Origin: Fonticula alba ATCC 38817
Lineage: Eukaryota; Protista; Nucleariida
Direction: 5' to 3' (one strand)
Assembly (NCBI GenBank): GCA_000388065.2
Contig: KB932201.1
Length of the DNA: 60,453 nt
In this document: one piece after another, positions 1 to 60,206 of the stretch
How positions within the stretch are numbered: position 1 is the stretch's first letter
How the letters are laid out: each line of letters begins with the position of its first letter
Notes under the pieces: model-generated
Databases searched by the model: none
What the model was told of the DNA's origin: nothing
Seen by the model: only the letters and a program-made list of their open reading frames with translations
Translations under genes and position numbers: made by a program

Positions 1-133
1 GTGTGTGTGTGTGTGCGCGCGCGTGTGCGTGCGTGGTTACTCCTGCCGCGCCTGAGGCGGTCTCCCCCCCTCCTCCACCACCCTCCCCTCTCTTCGCGCC
101 CCACCGCCCTCTGCGCCGTTCCCTGGCACCCCG

Positions 134-1926
134 ATGAACGAGCGCTGTGCGGTGATTCTCCTCCGCGGGAGCGGCGGCTTTGTCACGGGCCAAGATGGCT
201 CGGTGGCACTGGCCGACTCGCAGGACCCCTTGCCCGGGGCCTCATCCCCCACCTCCCCAACTCCCCTGAGCCCGGGCTCGGCGGCCGGCGGCCCGGGCGG
301 TGGCCTCGCCGGCACCGATTCAGCCTGCCTGCTGACAATCAACCAGGCTCGCGCATCGGAGTTCTCCCTCCTGCGCCGGCACTATCGCCATGGTTCGTAT
401 CCCCATCATCATTGCCACTCTCCTCCTGCCTCCGACCGATGCCTTCGCCCTACTTTCTTCAGCCTCTCTTTCTCAAGGTCCTTTCTGCGTTATTAACATC
501 ATTTTTGCACTGTCCGCCGTGTCGGCTCCGCAGTCATGGAGACAGACTGCGTCGCGTCGGCCATCCGTCTGACACGTGAGAGTGGCCTCCCCTTTTCAGT
601 CGTCCTATGGGACATTGATGAATTGCCCGCCTCCTGTCGGGCCACCCAGTGCTCGCCTTCCTCCTCCGCTTCGGCTACCTCGTCCCCCACGCAGGCCAGT
701 ACGTCAGGCTATTCGTCCCGGTCACCCCCCCCCCCCGACCCTGGCCCCGACCCCGACTCCCACTCCGACTCCGACTCTTTGCTTCTTCTCATGCTGACCT
801 TGCTTCCTCGTTCCAGATCATGCCCGTCCTGGTGATGCCGCCTCTTGCGAGGGGTGTGCCTACATTTCTCCCGTCGTTTCCACGCACAGCACCCCGGATC
901 CGGAGCTTCTCCTGGCACGGCTGGACGCGGTCCGGGCCCTGGATCCGTCGGTCGGCATTGTCTGTGCGTGTGCTGCCCTCTCGACCCTTCTGCCTCGGTT
1001 CTTCCGGTGAATTTGCAAACACTCACCCCCTCCCCTCTTCTTCGCCCTACAGGGCTCACCTCTTCCTACGAGGATGATCTGGCTACTGTGGCCATCACCC
1101 GCGGGCTGAACAATGTCGTGGTCCGCCCGCTCACGCCCCAGGCAGTTCGCACATTGGCCCTTTCGGCCACGGTGGCCTCCAAGCAGCATGATACTTGGCC
1201 ACCGGCGCTGGGAGACGGGGATGGCACTGAATCGCCGCGTGAGGCGCTGGCTCACCTGCAGCAGGCTGCTGCCGCCACCAGCCTCGAGGCCATTGACGGG
1301 TCGATCGACTACTCAAGCACATTGATTCCCTCTTGGTATCCCCTGTCTGGCGAGGACTATATTTACCCGAATGCCATCACAAACCAGTGCGTTGGGGGGC
1401 CCCCTTCCCCCGCCCATCCCCCTGGGCCCTCTTTTTTTTTTTTTTTTTTTACTGGTGCCAGTATGGCCACTGACTTTCCTCTCTTTCTTTCTCCCTCTCT
1501 TGCGCCCGTTTCCGGGCTCACATCCGCGCATCTACACACCATGTGCAGGGGCATCATGAACATCATGGCTATGTTTGGCAACCCCTTCGTTGAAGTGACC
1601 ATCTCCATGTTCCCGGAGTACGCACCCCATCATCTCCCCTCGCGGGGTTTCTTACTTTCCGGGCATTTCCGTCTGGCCGGCTCCTTTGCCCGTTTCACAC
1701 TCACTCCTTTGTTGTCCTTCTCCCTTCTCTTCCTGTCATCTCCACAGTCATAACTTCGAAGACACGGTCCTGAACAACTACCTGAAGTCCTGGAGCTTTA
1801 ATGCCCTCTCGTGCGCATCTTCCCCCTTTCCCCTTCGCTATCATTCATACACTACTGTGCCTCGGTTTGCCTCTTGTCTGTCCCCCTTTCATCTCATCCT
1901 TTCTCTCCCCCCCCCCCCCCGTCCCC

Positions 1927-2015
<89 letters not shown>

Positions 2016-4804
2016 NNNNNNNNNNNNNNNNNNNNNNNNNNNNNNNNNNNNNNNNNNNNNNNNNNNNNNNNNNNNNCCCGCACACACGGAGCCAAGTAAA
2101 CAAGCATCCCTCCCCCCCCCCCCCCCCCCCCCCCCGCCGGCCCCCTTCCTCCCCTCTCCCGAGCAGCCTCACCCAGACCCAGCTCCTCACGAGTGTTCTG
2201 TACATTTTCCAGAACCTCGACCTCCTCAGCACCTTTTCAGTCGACATGGACCGCTTCAAGCGCTTCGTCCTGGCTGTGCAGGCCAATTACCGCGACAACC
2301 CCTATCACAACTTTGCCCACGCGGTGGATGTCCTCCAGTCGGTTCAATGGTTTGTCCTGAACATGAGCCCCCAGCAGCGGGCCATCCTCCGGCCATTGGA
2401 TGTCCTTACGCTGGCCATCTCCTCGCTGTGCCACGACTTGTGCCACCCGGGGCTCAACAACTTCTATCATGTATGCTCTGCCTGTGATGTCATCTGCACA
2501 TGCGCGTTGCTCTATCCGGCCCATTGTGTCTCACTCTCCCGCTCGCCCTCCTCCTCCTTCTCCGCCTCCTCCCCCCCCCCTCCCCCCAACGGCTCCCATC
2601 TCGTTCCCGATGGCACGCAGGTCAATGCGCGCAATGCCCTGTCCATGCTCTACAACAACACCAGCGTCCTGGAGCACCTACATACGACCTTCACCTTCTG
2701 TCTACTCGAGCGGGCGGACCTCTTCTTCCTCGGGTCGCTGACCTCGGCCGACTGGGACTATTTCCAGCGCCATGTCCGGTCGGCCATCCTGTCCACGGAT
2801 ATGGCCATGCACTTTGAGTTCATCGGCAGCTGTCGAAACCGCACGGCCCCTGTCCTGCCGCCGTGCTCATCGAACTCCAGCAGCTCCGACCTATCCAGCA
2901 ATGGGTCGCTCCTGTCCAGCAGTGGATCGGCCGAGCTTGGCGATGCCGCGGCCGCCGGTGCCCAGCCAGATGCCGGGTCTTCTCTCTCCTCGGGGGCGGA
3001 TTCGCCGTCATCGTCGAGCCTGAACTCCGGCGGCCGGATGGAGCCGCTGTCCTCCATCAACAAGGGAGATGTGGACTTGGTGATGACCAGTCTCATCAAG
3101 GCGTCGGATTTGAGCAACACCGGTCGCGACTTCCCGATCGCCAAGGCCTGGTCGTATGTCCTGCGAGACGAATTCGTCTCGCAGGGACAATTGGAGAAGG
3201 AGCGCAATCTGCCGATGATTCCCTATGGTTCGGGAACCATGGACCTGTGGGATACCCAGCGGGAATTCATCGGCAAGGTGTCGCTGCCTTTCTACTCGGA
3301 AATCGCCAAGCTGGTTGATGTCTTCTACATTCCGGTCGGGCTGATGGAAAAGAACTTGGCCCTTTGGGTGGCTGTTGGTTTGGAGGAGGCCGCGCGTGCT
3401 GGCGATGCCGCAGCCATCGCGGCTCTCGGCGGAAGCGGCGGCCCCATCGGTGCCTCGCGTGACGCAGATGCCGGTGAGGATGACGATGCGGAGCACGCCG
3501 TTGCCGATCACGGGGCGCCCTGCATGTGTCCCCTCGAGCCGGGGTCCGCATCTGAGCATGCTCCTGCTGCCACTGTCACGGCCACGGCCACGGCCACGGC
3601 TTCGTCTGCCCCCGCCTGCCAGGCAACCATCACCGTGACTCAGCAGCAGGAGCAGCAGCAGTCGCAGCCATCGCGGCAATCATCGCCACCACAGCCGCCA
3701 TCCTCCCCGGGCGGGGAGGGGCTCAAGCGCCATGGTAGTCAGCGGTCGCCACCGGGTGCTGAAAAGTCCGACTCTGGGACCACTACCATTGTCACCGCCA
3801 CCGCCACCACGCCGTCGGGTTTTGTCCAGTCGGCCGGCTTCTCTGATCCCACCCTGCCGGACCCGGACTCCGGTCGGGTCTCGGCCCTGGTGGCCGCGGC
3901 CAACGCGCGCAGCCAGGATCCTGGCGTCGTTGTGGCCTCGGCAACCGGGCAGCGGAAGCCGGCCGGGCAGGTGACCGTGGCCTCCCCGGCCACCCCCCCT
4001 CCCACTGCCACCGCGGAAGATGGGACAGTCACGGTGTCGGCCGTGGCCACTTCCGGATCTGCGGCTGTGGCGTCGGCTTCGGTGGTCTCCTCCGCGGGTC
4101 CCGGGGCGGCCCCCTCTTTTGCCACGGTGGCTGCCAGCGGAGCGGTGCATGCAACCGCCTCTACGACGACGACCACCACCACCACCACCACCACCACCAC
4201 TACCGCCGCCGCCGGTGGACACGGCGGCGGCGGTGCCATGGGCTCGGCCAGTGGGACTCCCCTTCAGCGGTGGCCCTCCTGCCCGTCGGCACTGGCTTTC
4301 TCCGGCGCCTCGCCTTTCGGCCTTAATCAGGGCCAACAGGCGCCCGCCATTGGGGGACCCGGTGCCAGTGCGGCTGGCTCTTCCTCGACCGGTCTCCCGG
4401 CATCTGCTGTGGCCGTGTCGGCGACCGATCCGGCGGGTTTTCGCCCGGCCGGTGCCGGCGGGTCTGAGTCGGGTTCTCTCCCCCCGGGTGCCATAACCAG
4501 CACGGCTTCGGTGAATGTGCGCCCCTCCCCGGTGACCGGGGGGGGCGACATGGCTGCCGCTGGCTCGGCATCGGGGCTGTCCCCGCGCGCTGGCGGCCCG
4601 TCCTCCTCGGGGGGACCCCCTCCGGAGTCGGGTGTTACTACCTCCTCCCATCAGGCTCACATCCGCCGCCACCGTAAGACCGTACGTCCTGTTTGTGCTT
4701 CTCGGCTTCTCGGCTTCTCGGCTTCTTGCCCGTGTTTCATTCGTTCCTTTTCCGGGGGTGGCGGAGCGCGCATATCCAGCCCAGCTGTCGTCGGTCATGA
4801 CACA

Positions 4805-4860
<56 letters not shown>

Positions 4861-6259
4861 CACACGCACGCACATATTGACGACCTCTTCTTTTGCTTCT
4901 GCCTCCCCTTCCCTCGCCCTCGCCCTTTCCATGGGTCAGATTTCCCACCACCGGCGTTCCGATATGGAGGCCCTTTCGCGGACCCTCTCAAGCTACGAAA
5001 CGCCGAAGCATAGCGTGCACCTCGTGCAGGACGAGAGCAGCGGCATCCACCTGTACCAGCCCGGCAACGAGCGGGAGGTGGCTCGGGTCAATGAAGAAAC
5101 CGAGGCCCGTGCTCGCGACACCAGCCCCCTGCACTCAGGCACCATGCCGGCCCCTGGCTCCGTAAGTAGCTCTTCCCCTTGTCCGCCTCGAATTTCGCCC
5201 CTGAACCAGCATGTGTCTCCCCTGCGCATGGCATCTCCCTCGTCGGCGTCGTTCTCTGGCACGGTCGCTGCCGGGGGGCCGGGCCTCTCGGGCTCCGGTG
5301 CTGGCTCATCTACCACTCCGCCGCCGGTGCTGCGCCCCCCCCGGCGGGCATCCGAGTCGTCCATTAACACCTCACGGCCTACCCTCCTCTCGCCGGTGCC
5401 GACTCCTCGGGCCTTCCAGCCCTCGAGCCTCCTGTCGGCCGGCGGATCGCACCACCATCACCACCACATGGCCAGCAGCATGGCCGGGCCAGGCACCAGC
5501 TCCGGGGCCTCCTCCGGTGCATCGACTCCGACGGCTCTCTCACTGCAGCAGCAGCAGCTTCTTCTCCAGCAGCAGTTCCAGCACCGCTCCCCTCCTTCAA
5601 ATATCCGGGCTTCGCCCGACTCCTCGGTGGGCCAGCTGCACCTGCAGCCGCACTATGTGGCAGCCGGCGGGGCAGGGATACACGCCCCGTCGCCGCTGGC
5701 CGGTGGTGGTGGTGGTGGTGGTGGCGGCACCATGCGCCATACCCTTTCCCGGTCGGCATCCATATCCCACCCTCCCGGGTCTTCGCTGGACATGGCTGGT
5801 GGACGGGTGGTCGGCCTTCGGTCGACCTCGCCCCCGGGGTCCCCGTCGCCTGGGGCCTCGCGCCGGCCGTCGACCGCCATGTCGGCCTCCTCCTTGTCGT
5901 CGCTGAATGCCGGAGGGAGCTCGAACAATGTCTCGTACATCCGTCCTACTGTCGGTAATGTCACCGCATCGCACTCACTGTCCTCCTCGCCGGCCGCCTC
6001 ATCGGCCTCCTTCCTGTTGACGGCCATGTCTGCGTCGACGGCCGGTGGCGGGAATGCCGGGGCTTCGGCCTCCTCGCCGTCCCTTTCCTCAACTTCGGCC
6101 TCGACCGCCTCTCTGTCCTTCTCCTCCAGTAGCACCTCGGCTGGAGTTACTTCCGCCTCGGCCTCGGCCTCGGCCTCGGCCTCAGCCTCAGCCTCGGCTT
6201 CGGTCGTGTCGGCCACTGCTGGCAGCACTGTCAACAGTGCTGGCACGCCGCGGTCCTAG
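134..6259 (+). CDS. Class I (HD-type) 3',5'-cyclic nucleotide phosphodiesterase with N-terminal receiver (REC)-like domain and long low-complexity C-terminal tail, ~1573 aa
   Basis: Exons 134-392, 534-698, 817-963, 1053-1386, 1549-1617, 1748-1810, 2167-2470, 2621-4681, 4940-6259; all GT-AG with consistent phases. PDEase_I motifs NPYHNFAHAVDV, CHDLCHPGLNN, LYNNTSVLE, LSTDMAMHF, KASDLSN, LRDEFVSQG and TQREFI. The 5' end is uncertain because bases 1-133 look intronic and the gene may begin upstream of the window. Confidence 0.92.
1909..2134 (+). repeat. Poly-C tract (>100 C, interrupted by an N gap) in PDE intron 6
   Basis: Near-pure C run 1909-2015, Ns at 2016-2076, further C run about 2108-2134. 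Confidence 0.95.
4805..4870 (+). repeat. (ACGC)n tetranucleotide microsatellite in PDE intron 8
   Basis: Direct reading. It lies between donor GTACGT (4682) and acceptor CAG (4937-4939) and gives the spurious THAR repeats in the ORF track. Confidence 0.9.
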
Positions 6260-13739: not shown

Positions 13740-15428
13740 ATGGGCACTCACGTCCATGATGGCCATGCGGCGCTTGACCGCTTGACTCTGCCTCGGGATG
13801 GCTCGGACGCCGAGCTTTCCGGGCTTTTGCTTCAGGACATGGAGTGTGGCAACACCCCGGCCGCCATGAGCACCTCTCACTTGCTCGAGCGTCCGGCGAT
13901 CCTCCCCTGCGGGCATGACTGCCTGGCGGACGTACACAGTCCGCCGGTGAGCTGCGTCGTCGGGGGCCAGTGTTCGGCCGACCTGTGCCAGCCGCCGCTC
14001 GAGCTGCTGAGCATTACCTCGCTCGATGTGGTTGAGGCCCCCTTGCCGGCTGGGCACTTTGCGGTGTTTTCCTTCGGCATGTCAACCTTCCGGACAAGTG
14101 TACGCATCGCCTATTGCCTCGGTATTCATGCTTCGCCATGGTCACCCTCGGCCAGAGCTTTGCCAGATGTCCATATGGCTGCTATATTTACACATGAGCG
14201 CACACGCACATACACGCATTTGCGACTGCCCTCGGCATCAGGTATTTCGCGACGGTCGCTCGCCGCTTCCGGAGGGCAACCTATTGGCCTTTCTCCTTGT
14301 GAGGTCGTATGAGACCCAGTACCCGCTGAAGATCTCCCTCTATCGCCATCGGCGCCTGGCCAGCAGCAACGAGCTCATTGGCGAGGGGTATGTGGATGTG
14401 GCCCTCCTCCGACGGGACGACCGCCAACAGTTCTCCATTCCCTGCATCATGGTATGCCTGTCTGTTGTTAGCGCTGATGTTGCTGATGCTGCTGCTGCTG
14501 CTATACAAATACCGCTGGTGCTGCTCTTTTGCCCTCCCTCGCTGACCATGCGTCGCTTCATGCTCCGTGTTGGCCCTCTCCAAAAACGCCCGTCTGCCCA
14601 GTCCCCGACCGGTTCCAGCGAAGCGACCTTCACCTTGACGATCGCTGGCCGGCTGCTTTCCTGGCGTGCTATCCAAGAGTCCTTCTTCGCGCACGCTGAC
14701 GCGGCTCTCGGTGGCCAATGTCTTGAGGGTGCGCCAGTCCGCCGCAAAGACCACAATAGGCCCATGTCTCTTCACCCAGGTACTGACAAAGCCAGGCGTA
14801 GACGTACCTCTGGACCGTTTGGCCACCCTGCTCGACCAGTGGACAATGCATGTTTGCTCGGCCTTCGAGAACCTCGAAACGGCCGGCCCACTGGCCAAGC
14901 GCTACCTGCTGGTACATAGCTTGACGTATACGCTCCTACATGCACCGAGCCAGAGGGTTCTCGGGCTGCTGTCAGGAGATGCGCCCGCAAATGGGACTGG
15001 TACCAGCACACTGTCCTTGTCCTCGGGCGGCTCTTGCCATGTGCGCTCATCGTCTCCCCCCCCCTACCACGCCCTTTTTCAGTCTGACTCCCTCCCGGAT
15101 GATCCCGCGGCTGCCTATCCGGTAGCCGCTTCGACGGAGTACCTGGCCGAGTTGGACCGTGCCCTGGGCGAGGCTGGCGCTGATATGGTGCTCTCCCTGC
15201 CCGAGGAGATGACCCACGCGTATTCCGAGAACCCATTCATTGTTGGGGCCTTCTTTTCAGAGGCACAGGCGCGGCGAGGTCGCATCGCGCGAATCCTTCG
15301 CCGGCCACATCGCGCAGGGGATCTAAAGAGTACGCATCCCCCCTGTGCCAAGTCAAATATTGCCCCCCTCTCTCCTGGTGTCAGTGTTCTCCTGTGTGAC
15401 TTGTATGCATGCGCAGATATGTGTCTGC

Positions 15429-15459
<31 letters not shown>

Positions 15460-16902
15460 ACCTGACACCCGGTCTCATTTTCCTGGGGGGGGAGGCGGAC
15501 AGTCGGCCCACTGAGCGCCGCATGGCCGGCATTTGTCGCCCACAGGGAGCTATGGCTCCCCGCGGCGGTGGCATGCGCCCTGCTGGCCACGATCAGCCTG
15601 CTGGCACTCGGACCCCCGCAGCACCTGGCCGCTGTGGCCCTGGCTCTGGCAGCCGCGACCCTGACTAACCCCGAGTCGCGGTCGCACCTTGCCCCTCGGG
15701 CGTTGCTGGATTTGCTCCATCGATCAGGCTCCATCAGTGTCGTGGATCGAGCCACTGGGCTGGCCATGGTGGAGACCATCCCCTCGGCGGTGCGGCTGTC
15801 CATTCGGGCCCTCTACAACCAAAACCAGCTCCTTCGCCGAAGCCTGGAGTCGGCCACCATCCGGAATCTCTTCCTCCGGCTGAGCATCCGCCAGGGGCGT
15901 AAGTACAACGACCCACGCAGTGCCCAGTACATCGCGGGCTTTGTGGACTTCCATCAAATCAACATGGAAGACTTCGAGGCGCCGGCTCCCGGCCGGCCGG
16001 ATCAGCACTATGGCTATCAGACCTTCAATGAGTTCTTCTTCCGGCCTCTTCGGCCCGGGGCCCGGCCTATGGCCAGTCCCGGTGATGAGCGCATTTGCCT
16101 GGTCCCGGCGGATTGCCGCTTGACGCTCTTCCGAACGGTGAACGATGCCACGCGACTCTGGATCAAAGGGCGGAACTTCAGTTTGGAGGCCCTCCTCCGG
16201 CTGGACTTGGCCCCGGGCGGGCTCAGCCTGGATGCCAGCCGCTTCCATCATGGAGCCCTGGCCCTGTGTCGTCTGGCACCGCAAGACTATCACCGGTTCC
16301 ACTCGCCAGTGGCCGGCCGGGTGGTTGCGTGCATCGACGTGCCGGGGGCCCTGTATTCGGTCAATCCGATGGCCATCCGAGGCACGGAGATCGACGTGCT
16401 GACGGACAACAAGCGTGTGGTATGTCCTGACACTTGCTCCTCTCTGCCGACTTGCCCCACATCCCGTGCATCAGCTCGTGCTAACCGATGTGTCGCCCCT
16501 CTTTCCTCTCTCCCCACTCTCTCCACTCTCTCCACTCTCTCCACTGTCTCCACTCTCTCCACTCTCTCCACTCTCTCCACTCTCCCTCTCTCTCTCCCCC
16601 TCTCCTCCCCCTACCAGGTGCTTGTTATTGACTCGCCGGAATTCGGCCTGGTGGCTTATGTCATTGTGGGCGCCATGATGGTCGGGTCGATCGTCTTCAC
16701 CGGGCCCCACCGGGTAGGTGAGGAAATCCGCCGATTTGATGAAATCGGCTACTTTGCATTCGGTGGCAGCACAGTGGTCTGCCTCTTTGAGCCCGGGCGC
16801 TTCACGCCAGATTCCGACCTCGAGCGCAACAGTCAGCGCCCGATCGAGACTCTTGTTCGTGTCGGCACGTCCATGGGAACGGCGGCTGCTGGGCTGCGGT
16901 AG
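13740..16902 (+). CDS. PSD2: Phosphatidylserine decarboxylase proenzyme, Psd2-like with C2 domain, ~810 aa
   Basis: Exons 13740-14099, 14242-14451, 14602-14728, 14796-15329, 15503-16419, 16618-16902 with consistent phases. Motifs DRATG..VETIP, QGRKYNDPRS, TFNEFFFRPLRPGARP, PADCRL, RLAPQDYHRFHSPV and the self-cleavage motif FAFGGSTVV. C2-like LKISLYRHRRLASSNELIGEGYVDV. Start codon and N-terminal exons are less certain. Confidence 0.92.
16505..16585 (+). repeat. 9-bp tandem repeat (CTCTCCACT)n in PSD intron 5
   Basis: Direct reading, about 8 copies; appears as TLS repeats in the ORF track. Confidence 0.85.
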
Positions 16903-17543
16903 GGCAGTGTAGATGGCGCCTGGCCTTGGCGCCGCGTGCCCTCGGTCCCCCCTCCCCCCCCCCCTCCCCCGGTGCCCCAGTCTGAATGGCGATCAGGGCG
17001 TCCATTCTCCGCCAACAGCCGCGCTCGCACACACCAGCCGAGGCAACGAGCTATGGCGCGCACGTGAGGGAGCTGCAGACAGCGAGCAAAGAATAGACTA
17101 TTTGATCACGTGTGTTTGCTGACGAGTTTCTTGAGTTGTAGCATGTCGGCCAGCGTCTCCCGCCTTGCGGCCTGAGGGGCAGGGAAGACACAGCCGTGCA
17201 CCATGACAAGACCAGGCCTCTGACACACAGACCGGCCCCGGGCCCGAGCTCCCTCTCCTCGCCGGGCCAGGGCGCACGATGTGCGGATATGCAAGAGCTG
17301 CCCCCCCCCTCCCGTCCCAAGCCGCGCGCACATGGCCCCCGAGACAAGCTGGCGCGCGGCGCGGCACCTCCAGAGAGGAAGGCCAGCCCGAGAGGGGGCA
17401 GCAAAATAGCAGACACAGGCAAAATGCACTCGCTCTCGGCCCCAGCAATTCTCTTCACCCCCTCCGTTTCCACTGCGCGCGTGGAGAAAAAGGCCATACA
17501 CACACACACACACACCGCCCCATGCCGGAGGATGGCGTGGAAA

Positions 17544-17587
<44 letters not shown>

Positions 17588-18068
17588 CCGCCATGCGTGC
17601 ATCCCCCTTCGATGAACAGAGAGAGACAGAGAAGGAGAGACAAAGAGGAACACACGAGGGGGAGGGGGGGGGAGGGGGGCGGCACAACGTGTGGAAGAAC
17701 TTCTACATTCACAAAAGCAGCGATGGAACGAGGGGCAACTAAACACTGGAGAGGCAATGTGTATCACTTTGAGCGCCGAACCAGGCCCCGGGGTACCGCG
17801 GAATGCACGGGGAGGCATACACGGGCACACACGAGCGAGAGAGAGAGTGAAGGAGAGATGGAGGGGAAGAAATACGAAGAAAGAGAGGCCGTCGAGAGTT
17901 TGCGCGCACGCGGGGGGGGGGAACACGTTGTGCACGGGCACACGCGCGCAATGCCGGACTCTCTCCCTTGCTCGCACATCACACACCAGGGGAACACACC
18001 CCTGGCGCCCGCCAAAATCACATCTCCCAACCTAGAGAGGCAGGGACCACAAGGCAGCAACGGCGCAT

Positions 18069-19390
18069 TTACTTGCGGCGACGGCCCTTGGAGGAGGTGT
18101 CCTCAACAACATCGGCAGCATCGTCGGCGGTGGCGATGGCGCGAGTGTAGATGGTCTGAGCGTTGTGAGAAACGACGAGGCGGATCTTGCCCTCGGTGTG
18201 CATGCCCTACACGCGCGCGAAAGGGGAAAGGAGGAAGGGGCCACATGTGCCAGCGGAGGAGAGGGGATGTTAGGAGGGGAAACACGGCATGCGGGCGGTC
18301 AAAATCGCAAATGAAAGGAGACAAGGGAAGCGGACTGGCGCCTGGGAATGCGCGATGTCACGCCCCGGACGATGCGCGCGCACGCGCGCAAGTGCGGGGG
18401 AGACACGGCGGCAAACCAAGGCGCATGAGAGAGAGAGAGCCGAAACTGGGGCGCACCTTGAGGACGCTGCGAGCAACGGAGCAGTTGATCTTGTAGCGCT
18501 CAACAAGGATGGAGGGGGTGATAACCTTGGCGGTGGTCATCTCCTTGTTGATGCGGTCGATGGTCTCGGGGGAGAGGATGACAACGTTGTCAGCCTTGTC
18601 CTTGACCTTACCCTTGGACCACTTCTTCTTCTTGGAGCGGGACTGAGAGGCGGCGGCAGCGGCCTTCTGCTGCTTGGTCTTGATTTGCTTGGCCTATCGT
18701 AGATGCGGGCAGGGGGAGGAGCGAGAAGAGCGGGTCGTTAGTGGGAGGGGAACATTGGCACGGCCGGCACGAGGAGAGAGGCCACGTGCTGGTGGATGGG
18801 CGAGAGAGAGAGAGAGAGAGAGAAAGAGGAAGGAGAAACGGAGGGCCGTCGGATGCAACTCCAAAAAGATGCATCCGGTGGGGTAGACGACTCGGTTGGA
18901 AGTGGGAAATCGGAGACAGACGGCAACCAGCGGTGTGCGCCCCCACAACGGAGGCAGGACGACAACAGTATGTCGCCTCCAATGTGGTGCGCGACATCAG
19001 TGGGGCCGGAGGGGGAGGCACGGAGACCGCGGGCACAAGCAGAAAAGGGAGACATGGGTCCGCCCTGTCGTGCACATATGCGCCGCGCATCGACGACTGG
19101 GCGAGCCGCGCCCCTGAGAGAGGGGACGCATGCGAGCGCCTGGCCAGCCAGTCGACATGTATGCGCAGGTGCGCGCGGACAGGCGCGCACATGGACACAA
19201 TCTCCGAGCACGGGCACAACTGTCTGTCCAACTCCAAGAGAGCCATCGAGAGAGAGAGAGAGAGAGGGGAGGGGAGGGTGGGCGAGATGGGGCGAGGGAA
19301 GAAGGCGCAAATGCAAGGGAAACAGGGGGAGGAGAGGGCAGGAGAGCGAGAGAAAGAGCCAGAGGAGAGGAGGAAAAAACGACGAACCAT
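18069..19390 (-). CDS. RPS25: 40S ribosomal protein S25 (eS25), ~125 aa
   Basis: Exons 19390-19388 (ATG only, donor GTTCGT), 18693-18457 and 18206-18069. Protein has KKKWSKGKVKDKADNVV, ITPSILVERYKINCSVAR and SHNAQTIYTRA. Branch point ACTAAC at about 18737-18742. The first exon is the least certain part. Confidence 0.93.
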
Positions 19391-21690
19391 TCTTACTACC
19401 CACAAAGTACAGACAGAGACTGAAAGTATTAAGAATGTGTGAGAGAGACCACTGCGGCGTGGGTGGCGGTGGGCTATATCCACTTATAGGCGCCCACGAC
19501 CACACCCAGACGGAGTCCCTCCGGGCCGGGGCGTCGGGGAACTTGTCCGGCGCCCGTCGCCCCGCCCGGGGGGACCACAGACACACACACACACACTTAC
19601 AGCTTTCTCGGCTCCCCCTCCCCGCCGCCAGGGGCAGATGGGGGGGGATCTTTCGGCCGGTCCCCGCTCGGTGCCCCGTTCTCGCAGGAAGGAGGGGCGG
19701 GGGGGGGGGGGAGCCAGAGGGATCGCGTCCCGGCCACACGTTCACACTGCGTCCCCCCCCCCCCGGACCTCGCCCGTCACCCTTGTGCCGGGAGAAGGGG
19801 GCAACTGATCGAGAGGATCGCGCCGGGAGGACACCTCTGACAGAGGGAACTTCCTCCCCCCCGAGCTGCGCAGCTCGCGGTCCGCACGCACAATAGCCAG
19901 CCGTGGGAAGCCGCAGGGCCCCCGGTGATGCGCCCTGTCACGGCATACCTCCCAGCAAGCCTCCCAAGATGACCGTTGGTTGGTTATCCCATATCCCCGA
20001 CCCCCCCCCCCCACGGCCAGAGACAGCACGCCGGCACCGACTCCCCCACCCCTCGGTGCCACAGGTGGAGGCCCTCTGGGCCTCAATCCGAGAGCCACCA
20101 GCCAGCCGCCCCCGTCAGCTACAGCCCCTCGGTCAAGCCCGCACGCACCAAGGCCCACACTCCTACACCGGGGGCCGGGGGAGGGGGCAGAACGCTCGCC
20201 CCCCCCCCTCCCGCACACACCCTCTTGCCACCACCCCCCAGCCGCTGGCATCGAGTTCATACCGGATGGGGTCGACACCCGGAACGGGCGGGGGCGACCC
20301 CGCTCGCCACCTACACCGAGCTGACCACTATCGTCGCAGACAAATGTTCCAACACGGCCGGAGGTGGCGAGGAAGTCACTGCGTGAAGCTCGCCCAAAAA
20401 GCCGGCGGGCGTGAAGGCCGCCCCCTGAGAACCCGCAGACAACAGAACACCGGGGGGGGGGGGGAAGGGGCAGGGACCATGGGCGGGGAAAGAGGAAAGG
20501 GCCGTCCCACCCCCGGTGGAGGCACAGGCAGCGCATTCGGCCAGCCACTGAGCTCACCACAGGGGCTACGATTTTCGGAAGAAAAGACTTTTATTATGAC
20601 ATTTTTAATGAGGACACATCTCAAATATGATCCGCCTGACACCGGCGTGATCGTCCGCACAATTCCAAACAGCTCTGCCCCCTTCTCTTCCACACTTTCT
20701 GGGTGCCATTGGGGAGGTGTGGACCGCCCGGGGCGTCTTCGCTCAAAGAGAGGGCGTGCCGGCCCAACACGAGCGGGTCCCTGCGTCCCCGTTGCAGACG
20801 AGCCCGAGGAGAGGGATCTCCTGGCCGAGGTGGCGGGCGTCCTTCCAGGGGTGACGGCCATCACTCTCGGTCGACACTCTTGAGTCTGCTTGGAGTGGGG
20901 GTGGGGCCGGGCCCGGGCGCGGTTCAGTGTACAACCTGGCTCTTTCCGGGGGGCCGAGTGTTTGTTTGGGCCCATTTTCCCAGAGAGGTGTGCCGCGTTC
21001 CCCTTTCGGCTGGCGATGTTTCAGTCCGGGGCACTCGAAGGGCGAGGCCAGCCGGCCCCAGCGGCACCCCGGGGCCCATTGTGCGAGGCACCGGCGTGCG
21101 GGGCCTGGTGATGGGGGACCCTTTGCCGGCCCCACCCTGGAGGAGGCCTCTCGAAGGCGCTACTCGGAGAGACTGCACCCCCGGGCGTGCGTGCCTGCCA
21201 CACCTGCCCAGTGGCTCCGGCGCAGGAGACAGGGCGGCCGGGCTCGATCTTTCGTTCCCCGGGGCCCGGGGTGCTTCCAGCAGCCCCCCATCATTTGTCG
21301 GGAGAAGGCCCCGGGCCGCGGTTCCCTCCGGTGTCGATCGTGGTATGGAAGGGTCTCCCTTGTTCGCCCTTCCTACCGGGACGGTCTCCTTCCCAGGGCC
21401 CCGCCAATGGCCCGAATATTCCTCAAGGCGAAGGGGCAGATGCGCGTCAAGCGGGGCAGGGGCAGAGGAGAGCAGGAGGATTGGTGGGCCCTGGTGGATC
21501 AACAGCCGAGGATATGCNNNNNNNNNNCCCCGCCCCCCCCGCCCCCGCTTCGATGTGGGGGTTGCCCGGCTTGGGTGTGTGGGTCCATCCAAGAGGAGGC
21601 ACGCCCATGGCTTGCTGTGGAATTTGCGCGACCAAAGACCCCTCCATCTTTCCTCCCCCTCTCCGTGCCTCTCCTCCACACATCTTGCAT

Positions 21691-22798
21691 ATGGACGAAC
21701 AAAAATTCAAACTGGGGACATCCCCCTCACTGGGGCCCCTTGGCAGCAAGACTCTCGATGAGCCGCGCCTGTTCGAGGTGTCCTGGGAGGCTTGTAATCG
21801 CGGTGCGCTCTGGATGTCACCATGTGCCGGGGCCAGCTGGCCGATCTAACCTGAAGCGCCTTCGCCCTGTCTTCTGTCATCCGGGATTCTCCGTGCAGTT
21901 GGCGGGATTTACACTGTCCTGAAGACCAAGGCCGCGACTACTGTCGAGGAGTTTGGCGATCGGTACGTGCGACTTTCGAGTCCGGAAATGTCCACAAAGG
22001 CCCCCTCATCTTGGTGACCATGGGCATGCGGATCTCCTTCCCTCCTTCGCCTCCCCGCCCCCTCTCCCCCTCTCTCTCTCTCTCTCTCTCTCTCTCCCCC
22101 TCGCCTCCTCGCCCTCTCTTCCCGTCCTCCGTCGCCACTTCCTTACATCACCCCTCCGGTCGACCCAAAGCTACTGCCTCATTGGGCCGTATTCCAACAA
22201 CTCGCAGCTGGAGTTCGAGCCGGACTACCATCTGAATGGTGCCAGCCCGGCCCTGCGGCGGACCATCGAGGAGATGCGCGGCCAGGGTGTCGTCGTACAC
22301 TACGGCCGGTGGCTGATCAGCGGCTATCCATCGATCCTGCTCTTCGAGTTGGGCCCTGTGTCGGGGCGTCTCGGCGAGTGGCGGCACAACTGGATCAACT
22401 TGACCAAGATCCCCACCCCCGAGCAGGACACCGAGACCAATGATGCCATCCTTTTTGGATACCTGGTGGCCTGGTTCCTGGGGTCCTACCTGGCCCAGTA
22501 CCAACGGTACCTGGACGAGATGCGCCCCGGGGTTGAGGACGAGATCACCCCGCAGGTGATTGCGCACTTCCATGAGTGGCAGGTCGGCGTGGGGTTGGTC
22601 CTCTGCCGGGCGCGCATGTTCCGCATCGCCACCCTCTTCACCACGCATGCCACTCTGCTTGGTCGATACCTGTGTGCTGGTGACGTGGATTTCTACAACA
22701 CCTTCTCGCATGTACGTGTTGTATTCGGCCTTCCGGATAATGTGTACATGTTCGCGCAAATGCCCGTGCATATTGCCCATCACGCCCCGGTCGATACT

Positions 22799-22841
<43 letters not shown>

Positions 22842-23638
22842 AGCTGCTGCCTTGCAGAGTCCGCGCCCGTTAGGGGCAGCTGCGCGCCCGCCCTAGTCGG
22901 GACCGGGGACATCACCGGGGGGCCGCGTCTGTTCCCATTATCTCGCCCCAAGTGCCAACGGTCGCCGTGTTGGCGGACCGTCGTTTCCGCCGTTTTGTGG
23001 CTGACTGTGTCTGTCCTCGCCCCCCCGCCCCCCCTCCTCCCTGGCTGATACAGGTGAACGCCGACTTCGAGGCCTCCAAACGCCAAATCTACCACCGGTA
23101 TGCCATTGAGAAGGCTGCCGCCCACAGTGCACACACCTTCACCACGGTGTCCAAGATCACTGGCGATGAGGCCCTGTACCTTCTGGGCCGGGCGCCTGGT
23201 ATGTTCCTCCCCCCCCCTCCCTTGCCGCGCTTCCCCCTTGTTCTCGCCCCGACGCCCCCGCCCCCTCTGCCCTGCCCTCGCCCTTCTCCACGTCTTTCCT
23301 CCTGTCTCTTTTCGGCGTTTTGCCTCCCCTTTCTGTGCCCCCCCCCCCCCCCCGCCGCTCTCTCTCCGGCTCCCTGCTAGGTCCGGGCCACTCACCCGCC
23401 GCGCGCGCCCCACCAGACATCATTACCCCCAATGGCCTGAATGTGGTCAAGTTCAGTGCCCTGCATGAGTTCCAGAATTTGCACGCCCTGAGCAAGGAAA
23501 AGATCCATGACTTCGTGCGCGGGCACTTCTATGGCCATTACGACTTCGATCTCGACAACACCCTCTACTTCTTCACGGCCGGGCGCTATGAGTACCGCAA
23601 CAAGGGCGTGGACATCTTCATCGAGTCTCTCTCCCGTG

Positions 23639-23678
<40 letters not shown>

Positions 23679-26645
23679 CCTCTCTCCCTCTCTCCCTCTC
23701 TCCCTCTCTACACCTTGTGTCAGTACCCATGCCCAGGCCTTTCTAACTTCCTGAGTCCCCGCGATCCAGGTCTCAACCACCGGCTCCAGCTGTACGGAAG
23801 CCCCGTAACTGTGATCGCTTTCTTCATTTGCCCTACCCCGCACAATAGCTTCTGTATCGACGCGCTCAAGGGCCAGGCCGTAGCTCGACAGTTGCGCGAG
23901 ACAGTGGCGGAACTGCAGCAGGACATTGGCAAGCGCATTTATGAGGCAGTTCTCCGGTATGGCGTGATGCCCTCCATGTTCATATCCTTCTCCCCCCTCC
24001 TGCCCTTCCTTTCTCTCTCTCTCTCTCTCCCTCTCCCTCCCTCTCCCTCCCTCTCCCTCCCTCTCCCCCCTTCTCCCCCTCTCCCCCCTTCTCCCCCTCT
24101 CCCCCTCTCCCCCCTCTTCCCCCTTTATCTCACCATGTTTATCTCAAAACATGCAGCGGTCACATTCCCGATGCGGCCACCCTCATCAGCGAGTCGGACC
24201 GTGTCAAGTTGAAGCGCGGACTCTTTGCCACAGCCAAGCGTGATTCTCTTCCCCCGGTGACGACGCACAATGTTGCCAATGATGGCTTTTTCAGCCAGAC
24301 ATCCGGGGCGGCCACCACGCCGGACCCCATCCTGACGGCCTTCCGCCGGACGCAACTGCTCAACAAACGCAGCGACCGCGTGAAGGTCATCTTCCACCCG
24401 GAGTTCCTGTCCTCCACCAGCCCGCTTCTACCCATCGATTATGAGGACTTCGTGCGGGGCTGTCACCTGGGTGTGTTCCCCTCTTACTACGAGCCCTGGT
24501 GCGTGGTGGTATTTCTATTATCATTTCTCCCCACCCCTTTCCCTCTCCCCCTCTCCCTTGCCTCTTTTCCCTTTTCCTCGCCCCAGGTCTCTCCCTTTCA
24601 CCTGGTGTCTGTGACAAAAGTCTAACCTGCTGCAAATCGAACCCATTCTATCGACGAAATGCGCCTTCCCACCCTAAAGGGGCTATACCCCGGCCGAGTG
24701 CACGGTCATGGGTGTGCCGAGCATCACCACCAACCTGGCCGGCTTCGGATGCTATATGGAGGAGACTGTGCGTGCTTCAGGGCCGTCGACCGGGGACACC
24801 CCCAAGGACAGGGATCTCCGTGTCATATACTAATCCCCCCCTCCCACCCCCATATGTGCATGTATATATGCCCCCCCCCACCCCCCCCCACGACCGACCA
24901 TTCAGATCGACCGGCCAACCGACTACGGCATCCATATTGTCGACCGCCGTTTCAAGTCGGTCGAGGAGTCCATCAACCAAATGACCGAGTACATGCTGAA
25001 CTTCTGCCTGAAGACGTGCGTTCATGCTCCCGAGCCCCGGCCTAGCCTGGTGCACCCTCCCACTTGCATTCTTCTCCCTCATCATCGATCACCCCGCCTC
25101 CCGTCTGCTGTGGCTCATCGGCCACATGGGTCACGCCCCATCCATCCGCGCGCATGCATGGCACGAGATGGCATCCCTGACTGACTTGCGTCCATGAACA
25201 TGGCCAACAGCCGCCGCCAGCGCGTGAACCTGCGCAACCGGACTGAGCGTCTGGCCGACTTGCTGGACTGGCGCCGCATGGGGCTGGAGTACTCCAAGGC
25301 CCGATTCATTTCACTCGTGCGCGAGTACGGCAGCCTCTACCCCCCGGAGCGCCATGCCCTGGTGGAGGAAATCCTCCGGTCATCGCGCAACCCTTCCAAG
25401 CTGAGCCGACCCTTCTCGGCCCCCCCCTCGCCGAAGGCGGGGCACTTCCCCCCGGCGGGACCAATGTCGAGCGTGTGTATCCTCACATCGCGCCTCCTCG
25501 CTTTGCCATATGCCCAACTTAGTGCTGCCCGTAATGCTGTCACCATCTGACGCTTCTCGCCTGTGCTCCCCTCTCCCAATGGCTTCTTGCATACCCAGCG
25601 CCAGGATAGTTACGAGCCGATGGCCGGCTCTTCTGGCCACCCGCCGCGAATTCGCATCCAGGGGGCCCAGGGCGATCTGACGGCCGGTTCCGATGTGCCT
25701 GGGGGCTCGCCGGAGAAGGACCGGCGGTTTGGTGAGGATGTCGCGCCCCTGTCGGCTCAGCACCGGTCTGGCAGTGTGCCACGCCTACCGACACTGGACA
25801 TGGCCGCCGTTGGGGGGCTCATCAGCAGCCCGCCTGGGTTGTCAGCCGGACCTGGAGGTGGTGGCAGTGGCCTGCTTTTCAGCGGCCAAATGCCCGAGGG
25901 CTGCGAGTGTCTGCCGGAACTGGGACATTCCAGCATGTCGAGCGATTGCCCAGCCAATCGACTCCCCGGCATGGCACCCCTCTCCCCTCATCGACGGTCG
26001 TCCTCTTCTGGTGCCATTCCCGGGCTTGGGGGCAACTTGTCGGCTATGGGAAGGGACTCGTCAAAGGCGGCGACCGCTGCCGCCGCTGCTGCCAACACCA
26101 CAAGCAATGTCTTTAACAATGCCATCAGCGGGGCACTTAGCGGTGGTGCCTCCTCCGGTCGGCCGACCACCGGCATGACGACCTCCGGGTCTTGGGTGTC
26201 CTATGAGGACCTGGGGGAGGGTCTTGGGCCGGACTCAGCCGGTTCAACACGGCAGGGCACTTCACGGCGGGCGCCCACGTCTACCGGAACCACTCGCCGG
26301 AATGGCGGCAGCATGGCCGCCGCCACCGCCACCACCACCACCACCGCCATCGCCAGTGGTGCGGGGGGAAGCCCCCAGCGCCGGCCGGCGCCGACTGTGG
26401 TGGGCGACTTGCAATCGGCAGACACACGCGTCACTGCGCGAACGGGCTCCTTCGGCATGTCAGATGAGAGCGCTGGAGCGGCACGGGCCGACGACAATCT
26501 TGCCGATTTGGCAGCCAAGATGAGCGCTCTGTCATCAGGCGGTGATTCGGGGTCCACCGATGCGCATGCCGATATTTTGTCGGATGCAATGCGCCAGTCG
26601 TCGACCCCCCCGGTTCATGGAACCGTTTTGCCATGCAACCAGTAG
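21691..26645 (+). CDS. GSY: Glycogen synthase (GT3 family), ~1038 aa with extended C-terminal tail
   Basis: Exons 21691-21802, 21899-21962, 22171-22711, 23054-23198, 23417-23635, 23770-23956, 24157-24498, 24680-24767, 24906-25015, 25211-25472, 25599-26645. Motifs [99 protein letters not shown] and regulatory RPFSAPPSP. Confidence 0.97.
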
Positions 26646-47976: not shown

Positions 47977-50900
47977 GCCAATACCAACAGCAACATCAAC
48001 AACACTATCATCAACCTCAACAGCAGCAGCAGCAACAGCAGCAGCAACAGCAGCAGCATCAACCACAGCAGCAGCTCCAGCAAGCTCAGCACCACCAGCA
48101 ACATCAGCAGCACAAGCAACACCAGCAGCAGCAGCAGCAGCTCCGTCACCAGCCTCCCAGCTACCACGCCCATCAGCACATGCACCACCACCAGCCTCCC
48201 AGCTACCACGCCCATCAGCACATGCACCACCACCACCACTCGGCCTTGCAGACCGTCACCGAGGAGGAGATCCCCTTCATGCAGGGCTTTCCACAAGCCA
48301 CCGGGGGGTATCGGTCGGCTCCCAGCAGCCGGCCTTCCTCGTCGGAGTCCTTTGACCAGGCATCGCGCTACTCGCTCGGCATTGCCGGCCCACCACATCG
48401 CAGCCACCCATCCGATGGGGGATTTCACTACGCCCGGGGGAGTGCGTCCAATCGAAGCCAATCCGCCGAGGGGGATTTCCATCCGGGCCAGTCGGGCGCC
48501 CCGCCATCCATCTCCATCACGATCGGCGAGCAGAGCTGCAGCGGGCCACTCTCGGCGCCGGTCTACTATCAGCCACATTTGGCTGCCGGGTCGGAGGCCC
48601 GGCCGTCCAGTTCCAACGACAGCAGCCCGTCCACCCACTTGCCGGTATGTCACCGCGCCAGCGCGCTTTTATTCTGCGTCGCTCCGCCCCCCCCCCCCTC
48701 GTTCCCTCGCCGCTTGAATCGCACTCTGCTCAAAGGGTCTCTCTTTTCTCCCCCGGCTCATCTGACACTTCCTTGTGCAGGATCACCCCGCCGCTGCCAT
48801 GTCCCTGGGCAGGATGATGCCACCGACCGGCCAGCCGGCCCCGGTGGTCTCGAGCCCGGGGGCGTCGGACTTCCGGACCGGGCAGCCGATGGGCCCGGCG
48901 CCAGTGCCGATGCCCGGCGGCCGACGCATGAGCGAGCCGAGCATTTTGCTCCACACCCAACACCGGCGCGCCTCCTTCTCGGCCATCTCCACCTCCAGCC
49001 ATGGCGGGGGCTATGCTGACCAAGGCCCATCGGGCTACTTGGGGCCCTTTTCCGCGGGCATGAGTGCCCCGTCCGCGGCACACTCCTCGCCCGGGCCTTC
49101 AGGGGATTCCTTCTTCGTGCGCCAGTATACCCCAGTGCCATTCGACAGCGGGGCGCGACTTGATCAGGCCTTCGAGCCTGCGACTCAGCGACTCGTCACC
49201 CCCGCGGCCGGGGGCACGGGCGTCGGGCCGTCGTCCGCCACCGCGACCGCGACGCCGACCGCCGGAATGGGCATCGCCCATTCCGACGCCGCCGGCTATG
49301 CCAACACTGCCGACGAAACCATGGCCGAGCTACCGGAGCATCCTGGCAGCAGTATCGGCATCCGGCGGGGGTCGCTCGGTCAGGAGGGTGTCCACTCGCG
49401 CGGGGGCACTCCGGCTGCTCCGATGGCCGACATGCCCCCGGGACCCCCGGCCATGGGCGGCACGGGTGCCTTCTATTCCGGCCACTGTGGCCCGGCCGGT
49501 GGCGAGCCCCATGCCCGAGCCGACAACTATGGCACTTTTTCGACCCCTGGCGTCATCATGCCGCCGATGTCCCTGGCCAAGTCGCACCTGGTGGCCGGCC
49601 GGCGGCACTCGGTGCACACGTTGCCAAGTGGCGAAATGGGACCCGCATCCGTCGGACCGGTGCCCCCGCGCGCGTCGTCTGTCACGCCCACCGAGTCCAT
49701 GGGTCCCTCCGGCCGGCATGCGCTTCTCCGGCCGCCGCACCATGATGTGCGGCCTCAGCCCGGGCTGCTGTCCGCTCCTCCGGCGAGCCCGGGCTCTCAG
49801 TCGCATCTGGCAGCACCGCCGGCCCCGTCGCCGCTGCCGCCGCTGCCGCCGCCGCCGCTGCCACCGCCATCTGCCAACCGGCAGCCCGAGCCCACGCCAC
49901 CGCGGGCGCCGCTCCTGCCCGCCAACGAGGCCACCCCCCCGCGGTCGATGTCATCGTCGACCCCTTCCGCCGGGCCATTGGCTCTTTCATCGCACCCGGG
50001 GCCCATGCGCTCGGGCCACCTACCGGGCCCCTTCCGCACGGTGAGCTGCGATACACTTCTCGCCGCCAGCAGCCAGGGGCTCTCTCTGAGCTCCACGGCC
50101 TCCGATGACCTCAAGTCGGCCGCCACCTCCTTCCGGATCTCCCTCGCCCGGGAGGCTCGCGAGGGCGACACCCCGCTGGAAGCCCTCACCGAACGGGCCG
50201 GCTCGACGTTGCGAGCCCTTGCATTGCCGCCGCCGCCGCCGCCGCCGCCACCGCCACCGCCACCGTCACCGCCGCTGCTGCTGTTGCCCCCGGCACCCTC
50301 GCCGACGGCCCACACCGCGGACAAGGAGCCTCCCGGCAGGCCTCCGGTCGGAGCTCCACTCCCACGGCCGCAGACATCTCCCCAAAGGTCGAAGTCCCGC
50401 CAGGCCTCATCGCTGGAAGAGGAGCCCGATCGGCGGCATGGCGCCAAGCCGCGTCGGGCCTCGGTTCCGGTGCTGCCCATTCACCGGGTCAACCAGCGCT
50501 CGGTGCCGTTTGGCGAGCTGTCGCCCGGCCTGGCGGCCCTCGAGCCGGCGACACATGCCCCCGGCCAAAGTGGCTTCTCCAGGGCCGGCCCCGCGGCCGG
50601 ACCCCACACCGACAGCCCGCCGTACGGCCAGTCGCAGCCACCGATGCCGCGGGGCCGGTCGGTGTCCCTCGGCCAGGAGGACCACCCCCAGTGGGCACCT
50701 GCGCGGCGGTTCTCCTTCAGCGACTTGCCCCTGGCCGAGGAGGCCTCCCATCGTCCGAGCCCCCCGGTACCGGGGCCGCTGATCATTCGGTCGATGTCGC
50801 TGGATTCGCCGTTGGCCCTGGCGCCGCTGCATGACAGCAACACCCCCCTCGAGTCATTGCCACCCGCCAGCCCGCAGAGCGCCCCGCCGGTGTCCGAGGC

Positions 50901-53460: not shown

Positions 53461-54204
53461 CACACATATGCCGGTCGTCGGTCCGCCTTTTGAGCACTTT
53501 ATTTTTGTACTATTATCCCCCCCCCCCCCCCCCCCNNNNNNNNNNNNNNNNNNNNNNNNNCCCCCCCCCCGCCGCCCCTCTCCTCGCTTTCTCGGCCAGC
53601 GAGGGGAGAACGAAAGACCAGGGCCGAAGGATCGGGGACGGCAAATTTTGCCACCCAGTTTATTTTTGTCTATTTACTTTTGCCTGTCACCCTCTCCGTC
53701 GCCCCGCCCTCTCGCCCTCTCGCCCCTATTTCTGCCCCTCTGGCCCTCCAGGCCCCATGGCAAATGTACATCCAGATACCAGCACCCTCATCAATCCCCT
53801 GTTCTGCCACTCTGGCACCTCTCAAAAGGGGGCAGAGTATCCATATTTGTCTTTCCCTTCTTCTCTTTTTTCCGCCCCTTTTCCCTCAGTGCGCCCCGAT
53901 CCTTTGCCCACTGCTCGCCCGGGTGCGAGGGATCTCTCGCCACTCGCCAGCGTGACATCCATCGGAGGGGAACTCTGTATTTAGTCTAGGTGAGACAGGA
54001 GTATGAGTGTCGGGTTGGCAGAATTCGTGATGAGGAGGCACCAGAGGGAGGGGAGGAGGTGGGGGGGGGGGGGGGGGGGAGATACGACATAACGAAGGGA
54101 ACGAAATATTGAGAACGGACAAGAAACGTAAGCACTAGGCTACGACCTGAACCAGACGGAGGGGAGGCGAGGCGGGGGGGGGGGGAGCCAGCTCCGGCCC
54201 CGTC

Positions 54205-58139: not shown

Positions 58140-58173
<34 letters not shown>

Positions 58174-58402
58174 GGAGTGCCCAGGGGGTCTGCTCTCGCC
58201 CTCTCCCGTTTGTGCGACCGGAGAGAGTTCATCTCCGCGACACCAACGGATTTGGCTTTTCGGCCGGCGTCAGGACCGGCCCTGCCCGGGCGCCGGGGGG
58301 CGTGTCGCCAGCAAGTCCTCCCCCGGCTCCCTTCTCGCCTCCTTTCGCCCGAAGGATCCTCCCCCCCCCTCCTCCTCCCCTCGCACACCTGCGCAGCCCG
58401 CC

Positions 58403-59672: not shown

Positions 59673-60206
59673 GTGCGTCCCACTGCCCTCTGGATGGCAT
59701 TTTGCGCTCGCACGCACTAGCACACACACACACACACACACANNNNNNNNNNNNNNNNNNNNNNNNNNNNNNNNNNNNNNNNNNNNNNNNNNNNNNNNNN
59801 NNNNNNNNNNNNNNNNNNNNNNNNNNNNNNNNNNNNNNNNNNNNNNNNNNNNNNNNNNNNNNNNNNNNNNNNNNNNNNNNNNGGGGGGGGGGGACAAGTT
59901 CCGCCCCGAAGGACGGCCAGGACCGGTGGATCGAGGATCAGGGATCGGTAAAAAGACTGCCACCGATTTTGCGACGGGGCGCAGCTGATGGCCGGCGGCC
60001 GTCATCCCGCGCATGCACGTCTGGCACTTCTCGTGGCACATGGCACCCGCCGTCAGGACGAGAGGCAGGGCGGGGACCCTGTCCCCTGGTCAGGGAAGTC
60101 CAGAGGAGCGCGCCCCCTCTGAGGCTGTGGTCGGCCTGCGGCCGATCGACACCTGCCTCCCCGGCGGCAGCCCCTTCTCTCCAGAGGACGGACCATCTCC
60201 GTCAAC

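Follow-up and report, generated by a model that had tools for sequence, protein, structure and literature searches.

An expressed Fonticula alba gene fusing a receiver-like domain to a class I cyclic-nucleotide phosphodiesterase: a member of a Holomycota clade with a probable pseudo-receiver

Locus, gene structure and transcripts

The window analysed here, that is, the whole stretch of 60,453 nucleotides (nt) from contig KB932201.1 of Fonticula alba ATCC 38817 (assembly GCA_000388065.2), carries near its beginning an expressed nine-exon gene on the plus strand at 134-6259, with a product of 1573 amino acids (aa). The gene encodes a class I cyclic-nucleotide phosphodiesterase (PDE) preceded by a domain that profile comparisons relate to the CheY-type receiver (REC) domains. 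An earlier sequence-only reading had proposed a receiver fused to a class I PDE and split across four separate open reading frames (ORFs); the fusion is real and expressed, as seen from spliced transcript contigs, matches to PF00233 and REC profiles. The NCBI record already models this gene and gives it a 1573-aa product, so that the novelty lies in the domain reading alone; over the 20 kb compared, the window and KB932201.1 are identical. The public gene call for this locus (at 3740-6259) has no Pfam family on record despite the strong PF00233 match, and two protein searches did not find the locus's own product, the best match being 41% identical. The features of the gene are as follows.

40..133, plus strand: 5' untranslated region; a contig (X2 record 2) begins at 40, transcripts reach at least position 40, and the frame ahead of the ATG at 134 holds a stop
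134..392, plus strand: exon 1, start codon at 134, aa 1-86; low-complexity leader, then receiver beta1 and alpha1 (aa 64-86, nt 323-392)
534..698, plus strand: exon 2, receiver beta2-alpha2-beta3 with D113 (611-613) and D115 (617-619); a Ser-rich insert begins at nt 623
817..963, plus strand: exon 3, end of the loop insert (up to aa 168, nt 896) followed by receiver alpha3 and the first part of beta4
1053..1386, plus strand: exon 4, beta4 (T193, 1058-1060), alpha4, beta5 (R215-P216, 1124-1129) and alpha5 (to about nt 1174), then linker
1549..1617, plus strand: exon 5, linker from receiver to PDE
1748..1810, plus strand: exon 6, 63 nt, pre-catalytic segment (...YLKSWSFNAL...)
1811..2166, plus strand: intron 6, with long poly-C runs and an assembly gap at 2016-2076; absent from the mRNA (1810-2167 joint in four runs)
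2167..2470, plus strand: exon 7, beginning of the PDE catalytic domain (positions 1-54 of the PDEase_I profile); carries H393, H397, H435, D436 and H439
2621..3418, plus strand: exon 8, first part, remaining PDE catalytic domain (profile positions 55-228), with E465, H468, T506, D507, H511, D610, E631, Q635 and F663
3419..4681, plus strand: exon 8, rest, low-complexity C-terminal tail; contigs unbroken to 4600
4682..4939, plus strand: probable intron 8 (GTACGT..CAG, 258 nt, in frame, with a (CACG)n microsatellite), placed from the sequence and the recorded product length
4940..6259, plus strand: exon 9, C-terminal tail, stop codon at 6257-6259

The junctions were first placed from the sequence, as GT..AG introns joining open frames, and then compared with transcript contigs from four RNA runs of two samples. 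About 60% of the sampled words of 134-3400 were present in the four runs, which is near the exonic share. Seven intervals were skipped in contigs of all four runs (392|534, 698|817, 963|1053, 1386|1549, 1617|1748, 1810|2167 and 2470|2621); all seven have GT..AG borders, and the contigs have no extra letters between the two sides. The ORF obtained by joining exons 1 to 8 contains no stop codon, and the codon for W191 is divided by intron 3. For exons 1 to 4 the contigs join exactly the exons that had been proposed from the letters, and the spliced peptide was reproduced (...LLRRHYRH/VMETDC..., WD at 611-613, and VVRP with its R at 1124-1126).

Exon 6 is joined straight to exon 7 in the contigs, so that the assembly gap at 2016-2076 hides no exon; it lies within the spliced-out intron 6 and therefore leaves the reading frame untouched. 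Poly-C runs of more than 100 nt flank the gap on both sides (1900-2140), and difficulty in sequencing them probably caused it. Intron 8 is likely; removal of 4682-4939 gives a product of exactly 1573 aa, the length recorded for this locus in GCA_000388065.2. A second short GTAAGT..CAG interval (48 nt, 5162-5209) is also in frame and must stay in for that length to be reached. Should intron 8 be spliced, one contig (X1) would stop at about 5161, a hint of an isoform bubble at that point. One contig in each of the four runs follows the window over 246-296 and then departs into unrelated letters (CCAGCAGCGAGCTGCAGTTGG...); it could be a chimera, a different transcript that has this GC-rich low-complexity sequence in common, or the product of alternative splicing to a site beyond the region compared.

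The phosphodiesterase and receiver-like domains

Judged by its residues, the segment encoded by exons 7 and 8 (aa 376-713) is a catalytically intact class I cyclic-nucleotide PDE (PF00233, HD superfamily). In Pfam searches, the PDEase_I family matched exon 7 with 58.2 bits (E 1.3e-15, profile positions 1-54) and exon 8 with 111.5 bits (E 6.7e-32, profile positions 55-228), each above the curated PF00233 cut-off of 24.8 bits, and the two matches abut across the junction. When aligned with 129 relatives, the window protein is identical at 28 of the 30 columns that are conserved in 88% of rows or more, and the metal-binding and catalytic set (HNxxH, HDxxH, E..H, TD, D and the invariant Gln) is complete. 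A Ser-rich low-complexity insert of about 75 aa (about nt 2830-3050) splits the domain, falling after the TD..H motif and ahead of the next Asp motif; it resembles a simple-sequence interruption described in Dictyostelium PDE4 (PMC11988041). The PDE is followed by a low-complexity tail of about 860 aa.

Homology of the spliced N-terminus (aa 64-231) to CheY-type receivers emerged only with profiles; when this N-terminus was compared by phmmer with the 150 nearest PDEs, nothing matched. The hidden Markov model (HMM) used for REC was built from five E. coli receivers (cheY, cheB, rcsB, rcsC and atoC) and 27 receivers from PDE relatives, a mixed set that was assembled because a CheY search for diverse receivers had returned only near-identical CheY. 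Against the native spliced N-terminus this model scored 20.0 bits in two collinear pieces (aa 76-116 and 181-231), and after removal of aa 117-168 it scored 32.4 bits in a single piece, while the maxima over 3000 shuffles were 4.3 bits (native) and 6.2 bits (insert removed) and the best other stop-free segment of the window reached 6.7 bits. A model of the E. coli receivers only gave 11.1 bits for the native sequence and 13.8 bits without the insert (shuffle maxima 6.7 and 7.3). An hhalign comparison with the REC alignment spanned the insert and covered aa 77-230 (E 1.5e-5), and an HMM of the N-terminal domain of the clade described below, made with the window protein excluded, matched aa 70-235 as a single domain (20.9 bits; shuffle maximum 3.7). 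When exon 4 was compared with Protein Data Bank (PDB) sequences, the sole match was a CheY homologue, at alpha4-beta5. The receiver exon pieces also fall on the expected columns of the family alignment. The receiver pattern that had been read into the spliced N-terminus is thus borne out by the REC HMM and hhalign profile comparisons. The Ser-rich insert, first put at about 50 aa, is real as well; it measures 52 aa (aa 117-168), lies in the beta3-alpha3 loop and is retained in the mRNA.

The residues of the phosphorylation pocket are partly conserved. D113 (nt 611-613) aligns with CheY D57, the phospho-acceptor position at the end of beta3, T193 stands at the Thr/Ser position of beta4, and P216 stands at the Pro of the Lys-Pro motif. 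R215 occupies the place where the conserved Lys is expected after beta5, and aa 63-75 (SACLLTINQARAS), the expected site of the Mg2+-binding acidic pair (CheY D12/D13), contain neither Asp nor Glu. The profile alignment agrees here with each residue call of the sequence-only reading: Asp and Thr kept, Lys replaced by Arg, and the acidic pair absent. In CheY, phosphorylation or signalling suffers severely when Asp13 or Lys109 is changed.

Family and known receiver phosphodiesterases

An exhaustive search with the exon 8 PDE piece returned 4074 relatives, the best of them 41% identical. A quick tree of 129 catalytic domains (support by the Shimodaira-Hasegawa-like approximate likelihood ratio test, SH-aLRT) and a careful tree of 81 rows were made, and the window PDE falls in a clade of 36 rows with support of 99 in the former and 100/100 in the latter. 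A receiver-like N-terminal domain is present in 24 of the 36 rows, and most of the others look like fragments. The named members are early-diverging fungi (Mycotypha, Benjaminiella, Chlamydoabsidia, Apophysomyces, Radiomyces, Calcarisporiella, Ambispora and Basidiobolus) and span Mucoromycota, Glomeromycotina and Basidiobolus. A fragment from the nucleariid Parvularia atlantis (EP00160_P014592) is among the closest PDE matches and is too short for the tree. The nearest tree neighbours of the window protein are environmental sequences (support 96/82), and its branch is long (1.4-1.7). From these trees the Fonticula gene is placed as a member of a Holomycota receiver-PDE clade that is distinct from amoebal RegA.

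The receiver of this clade generally scores low against Pfam. Among 67 full-length relatives, PF00072 was found in 21 (E<=0.001) and Hpt in seven. In the fungal clade members that match, PF00072 scores 15.8-24.5 bits against a cut-off of 30.2, several others have no match, and routine annotation would therefore not report the domain; the sub-threshold members (P0135, P0140, P0167, P0170, P0181, P0185, P0189, P0190 and P0203) are labelled only as PDE or hypothetical. The same holds for named fungal proteins such as Apophysomyces KAG0179237.1, Basidiobolus ranarum KAK9760252.1, Mycotypha africana XP_052936950.1 and Calcarisporiella XP_069247210.1, which are annotated as "3',5'-cyclic-nucleotide phosphodiesterase" or as hypothetical. 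Across the clade the acidic pair is generally degenerate, most sub-threshold fungal members being without the canonical DD, and two motifs recur, D-x-D at beta3 and [KR]PL....TL.L. In several members the beta3-alpha3 loop, where the insert of the window protein lies, is likewise the place of a large insert. The first 150 aa of the Chlamydoabsidia member were modelled with AlphaFold2 from a clade-only alignment (predicted local distance difference test score, pLDDT, 91) and have a beta1-alpha1...beta5-alpha5 topology; the top 50 PDB matches of this model in Foldseek are 46 receivers of response regulators or histidine kinases and four CpaE/TadZ CheY-like atypical receivers.

The Fonticula protein shares with the fungal receiver-PDEs its clade, the order of its domains, the insertion site after the beta3 Asp and both motifs. 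It differs from them in that its PDE domain is only about 40% identical and groups with environmental sequences, and in that no acidic residue is left after beta1, the conserved Lys is Arg, and the tail of about 860 aa is present. Literature searches turned up no account of a receiver-PDE from Fonticula or from fungi.

The sequence-only reading had called the architecture RegA-like, and that description holds for the architecture. RegA is activated by a His-Asp phosphorelay, in which phosphorylation at Asp212 activates the enzyme (PMC11988041, PMC5055082), and a BLAST survey reported RegA homologues only in Dictyostelia, Acanthamoeba and Naegleria (PMC3906536). Like RegA of Dictyostelium, Acanthamoeba and Naegleria, and like the Acrasis kona protein KAL0486744.1 ("cAMP phosphodiesterase regA"), the window protein has an N-terminal receiver ahead of a class I PDE, and all of them come from aggregative or free-living amoebae. 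The RegA-type receivers among the relatives have the full DD/D/S/K set, whereas the Fonticula receiver does not. The heterolobosean Acrasis "regA" and a Willaertia protein fall in a different well-supported clade from the window PDE, in a tree that is without Dictyostelium RegA itself, and with the window PDE in the separate Holomycota clade (100/100) the resemblance to RegA is judged to be one of architecture and not of orthology. Some RegA-like heterolobosean or environmental relatives (P0130, P0132, P0163 and P0202) have a second, C-terminal receiver-like domain, so that receiver-PDE-receiver/Hpt architectures occur among the RegA-like relatives.

Animal PDE8 is likewise an opisthokont PDE with an N-terminal receiver domain; it has a REC-PAS-catalytic order, and the function of its receiver is unknown (PMC13095499). 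Pfam found no PAS domain on the window exon pieces, and PAS is not among the 18 families detected in the 67 relatives. The solved catalytic domain of PDE8A is no closer than that of PDE9A or PDE4 to the nearest relative, and PDE8A does not appear in the 60 best PDB matches of the window's own catalytic exon. Orthology to PDE8 was rejected, since PAS is absent and the catalytic domain is no closer to PDE8. One relative has a weak PDE8A_N match. Plant PRR/APRR proteins and the N-domain of KaiA are pseudo- or atypical receivers that have a CheY fold and lack part of the phosphorylation pocket. So are the CpaE/TadZ N-domains, which rank high in the structural comparison of the family model. The Fonticula domain likewise lacks part of the pocket and would keep the CheY scaffold. 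All of these have other outputs, in contrast to the cyclic-nucleotide PDE found here.

The neighbouring genes in the window (13740-26645 and 48775-59985) include no two-component genes. They are as follows.

13740-16902, plus strand: phosphatidylserine decarboxylase, H696_00930
about 18069-19390, minus strand: ribosomal protein S25
about 21553-26645, plus strand: glycogen synthase
48775-53457, plus strand: HMG-box ORF
57796-59985, plus strand: transketolase-family ORF

Function of the receiver-like domain

The best explanation of the evidence as a whole is that the gene is an expressed Fonticula receiver-PDE of the Holomycota clade whose receiver is most likely a pseudo-receiver, and the probability of this reading is put at roughly 0.7. 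Because the acidic pair is gone and Arg stands in place of Lys, the Fonticula domain is most likely a phosphorylation-independent pseudo-receiver that regulates the PDE; the sequence-only reading had raised this as a caution, and the pocket residues favour it here too. The protein consists, in order, of a low-complexity leader, an atypical receiver with a disordered 52-aa insert, a linker, the class I PDE and a long low-complexity tail. The PDE would hydrolyse cAMP or cGMP, cAMP being the more likely by analogy. By analogy with RegA, the receiver-like domain may regulate the PDE; it would gate or dimerise the catalytic domain through the long alpha5 helix and the linker. As a pseudo-receiver it would serve as a phosphorylation-independent allosteric, dimerisation or docking module, and would be the leftover of an ancestral PDE controlled by a histidine kinase.

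Several observations weigh against one or another part of this reading. Canonical receivers alone score weakly against the N-terminus (4.1 bits for the native sequence, 10.4 bits once the insert is removed), and much of the receiver signal therefore comes by way of the fungal family. Pfam gave no match on the single exon pieces 1 to 4 even at E<=10; these pieces are too short for the null result to be evidence against a receiver. The (beta/alpha)5 fold was predicted for the homologous domain of a fungal relative, and the window's own domain is known from sequence profiles. As to the substrate, PDB sequence searches found the nearest solved catalytic domains to be kinetoplastid PDEB1, PDE9A and PDE4, with similar scores; PDE9A is cGMP-specific and PDE4 is cAMP-specific. 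Finally, the loss of phospho-acceptance is deduced from residues alone, and the kept Asp and Thr and the family-wide D-x-D could mean that the domain is still phosphorylated.

This last point is the substance of the main rival explanation, in which the receiver is a working phospho-acceptor: D113 would receive its phosphate by way of a Fonticula hybrid histidine kinase and an Hpt protein, and the PDE would thereby be switched in the manner of RegA, linking the sensing of the environment to cAMP and protein kinase A (PKA) in aggregation. It is considered unlikely. The Asp, Thr and Pro positions are conserved in the window protein, most clade members keep Asp, Ser/Thr and Lys, and some retain a single acidic residue behind beta1; non-animal opisthokonts commonly possess histidine kinases (PMC6324907), and the RegA mechanism is established (PMC5055082, PMC11988041). 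The residues of the Fonticula domain itself argue the other way, there being no Asp or Glu at or near the Mg-binding positions (aa 63-75), an Arg for the conserved Lys, and a 52-aa insert adjoining the active-site loop. The effect of changes at Asp13 and Lys109 in CheY, noted above, also stands against it. Another reading, judged very improbable, takes the N-terminal domain for a relic in decay that regulates nothing and is attached to a constitutive PDE with long disordered regions. Such decay would suit the degenerate catalytic residues of the receiver, the large low-complexity inserts in both domains and the low-complexity tail, and the long branch of the window protein, but the hydrophobic core pattern and the family motifs still give 20-32 bits, and selection is suggested by the persistence of the domain across a clade that takes in Fonticula as well as several lineages of early-diverging fungi. 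The probability that the receiver pattern is a chance or compositional resemblance in an unrelated N-terminal domain is set close to nil. The Pfam null on single exon pieces could be taken in its favour, and so could a protein-atlas search with exon 4, a lead only, which scored just 0.70 and had 39 of its 100 matches in the PF00072-labelled set. None of the 3000 shuffles reached even one third of the native score, however, and the matches are collinear over four exons; independent methods concur (profile HMMs, hhalign, the PDB match and the exon-piece alignment), and the homologous domain of the relative folds as a receiver.

A more far-reaching scenario was also considered, and is regarded as doubtful. 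The Holomycota receiver-PDE clade would share with RegA and PDE8 an ancient ancestor in which a histidine kinase controlled a cAMP PDE; in Fonticula D113 would even now act as the switch of the enzyme, through a phosphorelay or a novel D-x-D chemistry, and the enzyme would control cAMP and PKA in sorocarp formation, in parallel to Dictyostelium.

Receiver-PDE fusions are the meeting point of two-component signalling and cAMP in social amoebae. The RegA literature consulted describes them from Dictyostelia, Acanthamoeba and Naegleria only. Fonticula and early-diverging fungi share a separate receiver-PDE clade, and the receiver of this clade is easily missed, as it lies below the Pfam threshold in the fungal members tested. 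The clade offers a set of proteins with which to ask whether histidine-kinase control of cyclic-nucleotide breakdown was ancestral to opisthokonts, and how decay into phosphorylation-independent pseudo-receivers happened. For Fonticula itself, the gene is a candidate cAMP regulator in an organism whose aggregative habit evolved independently.

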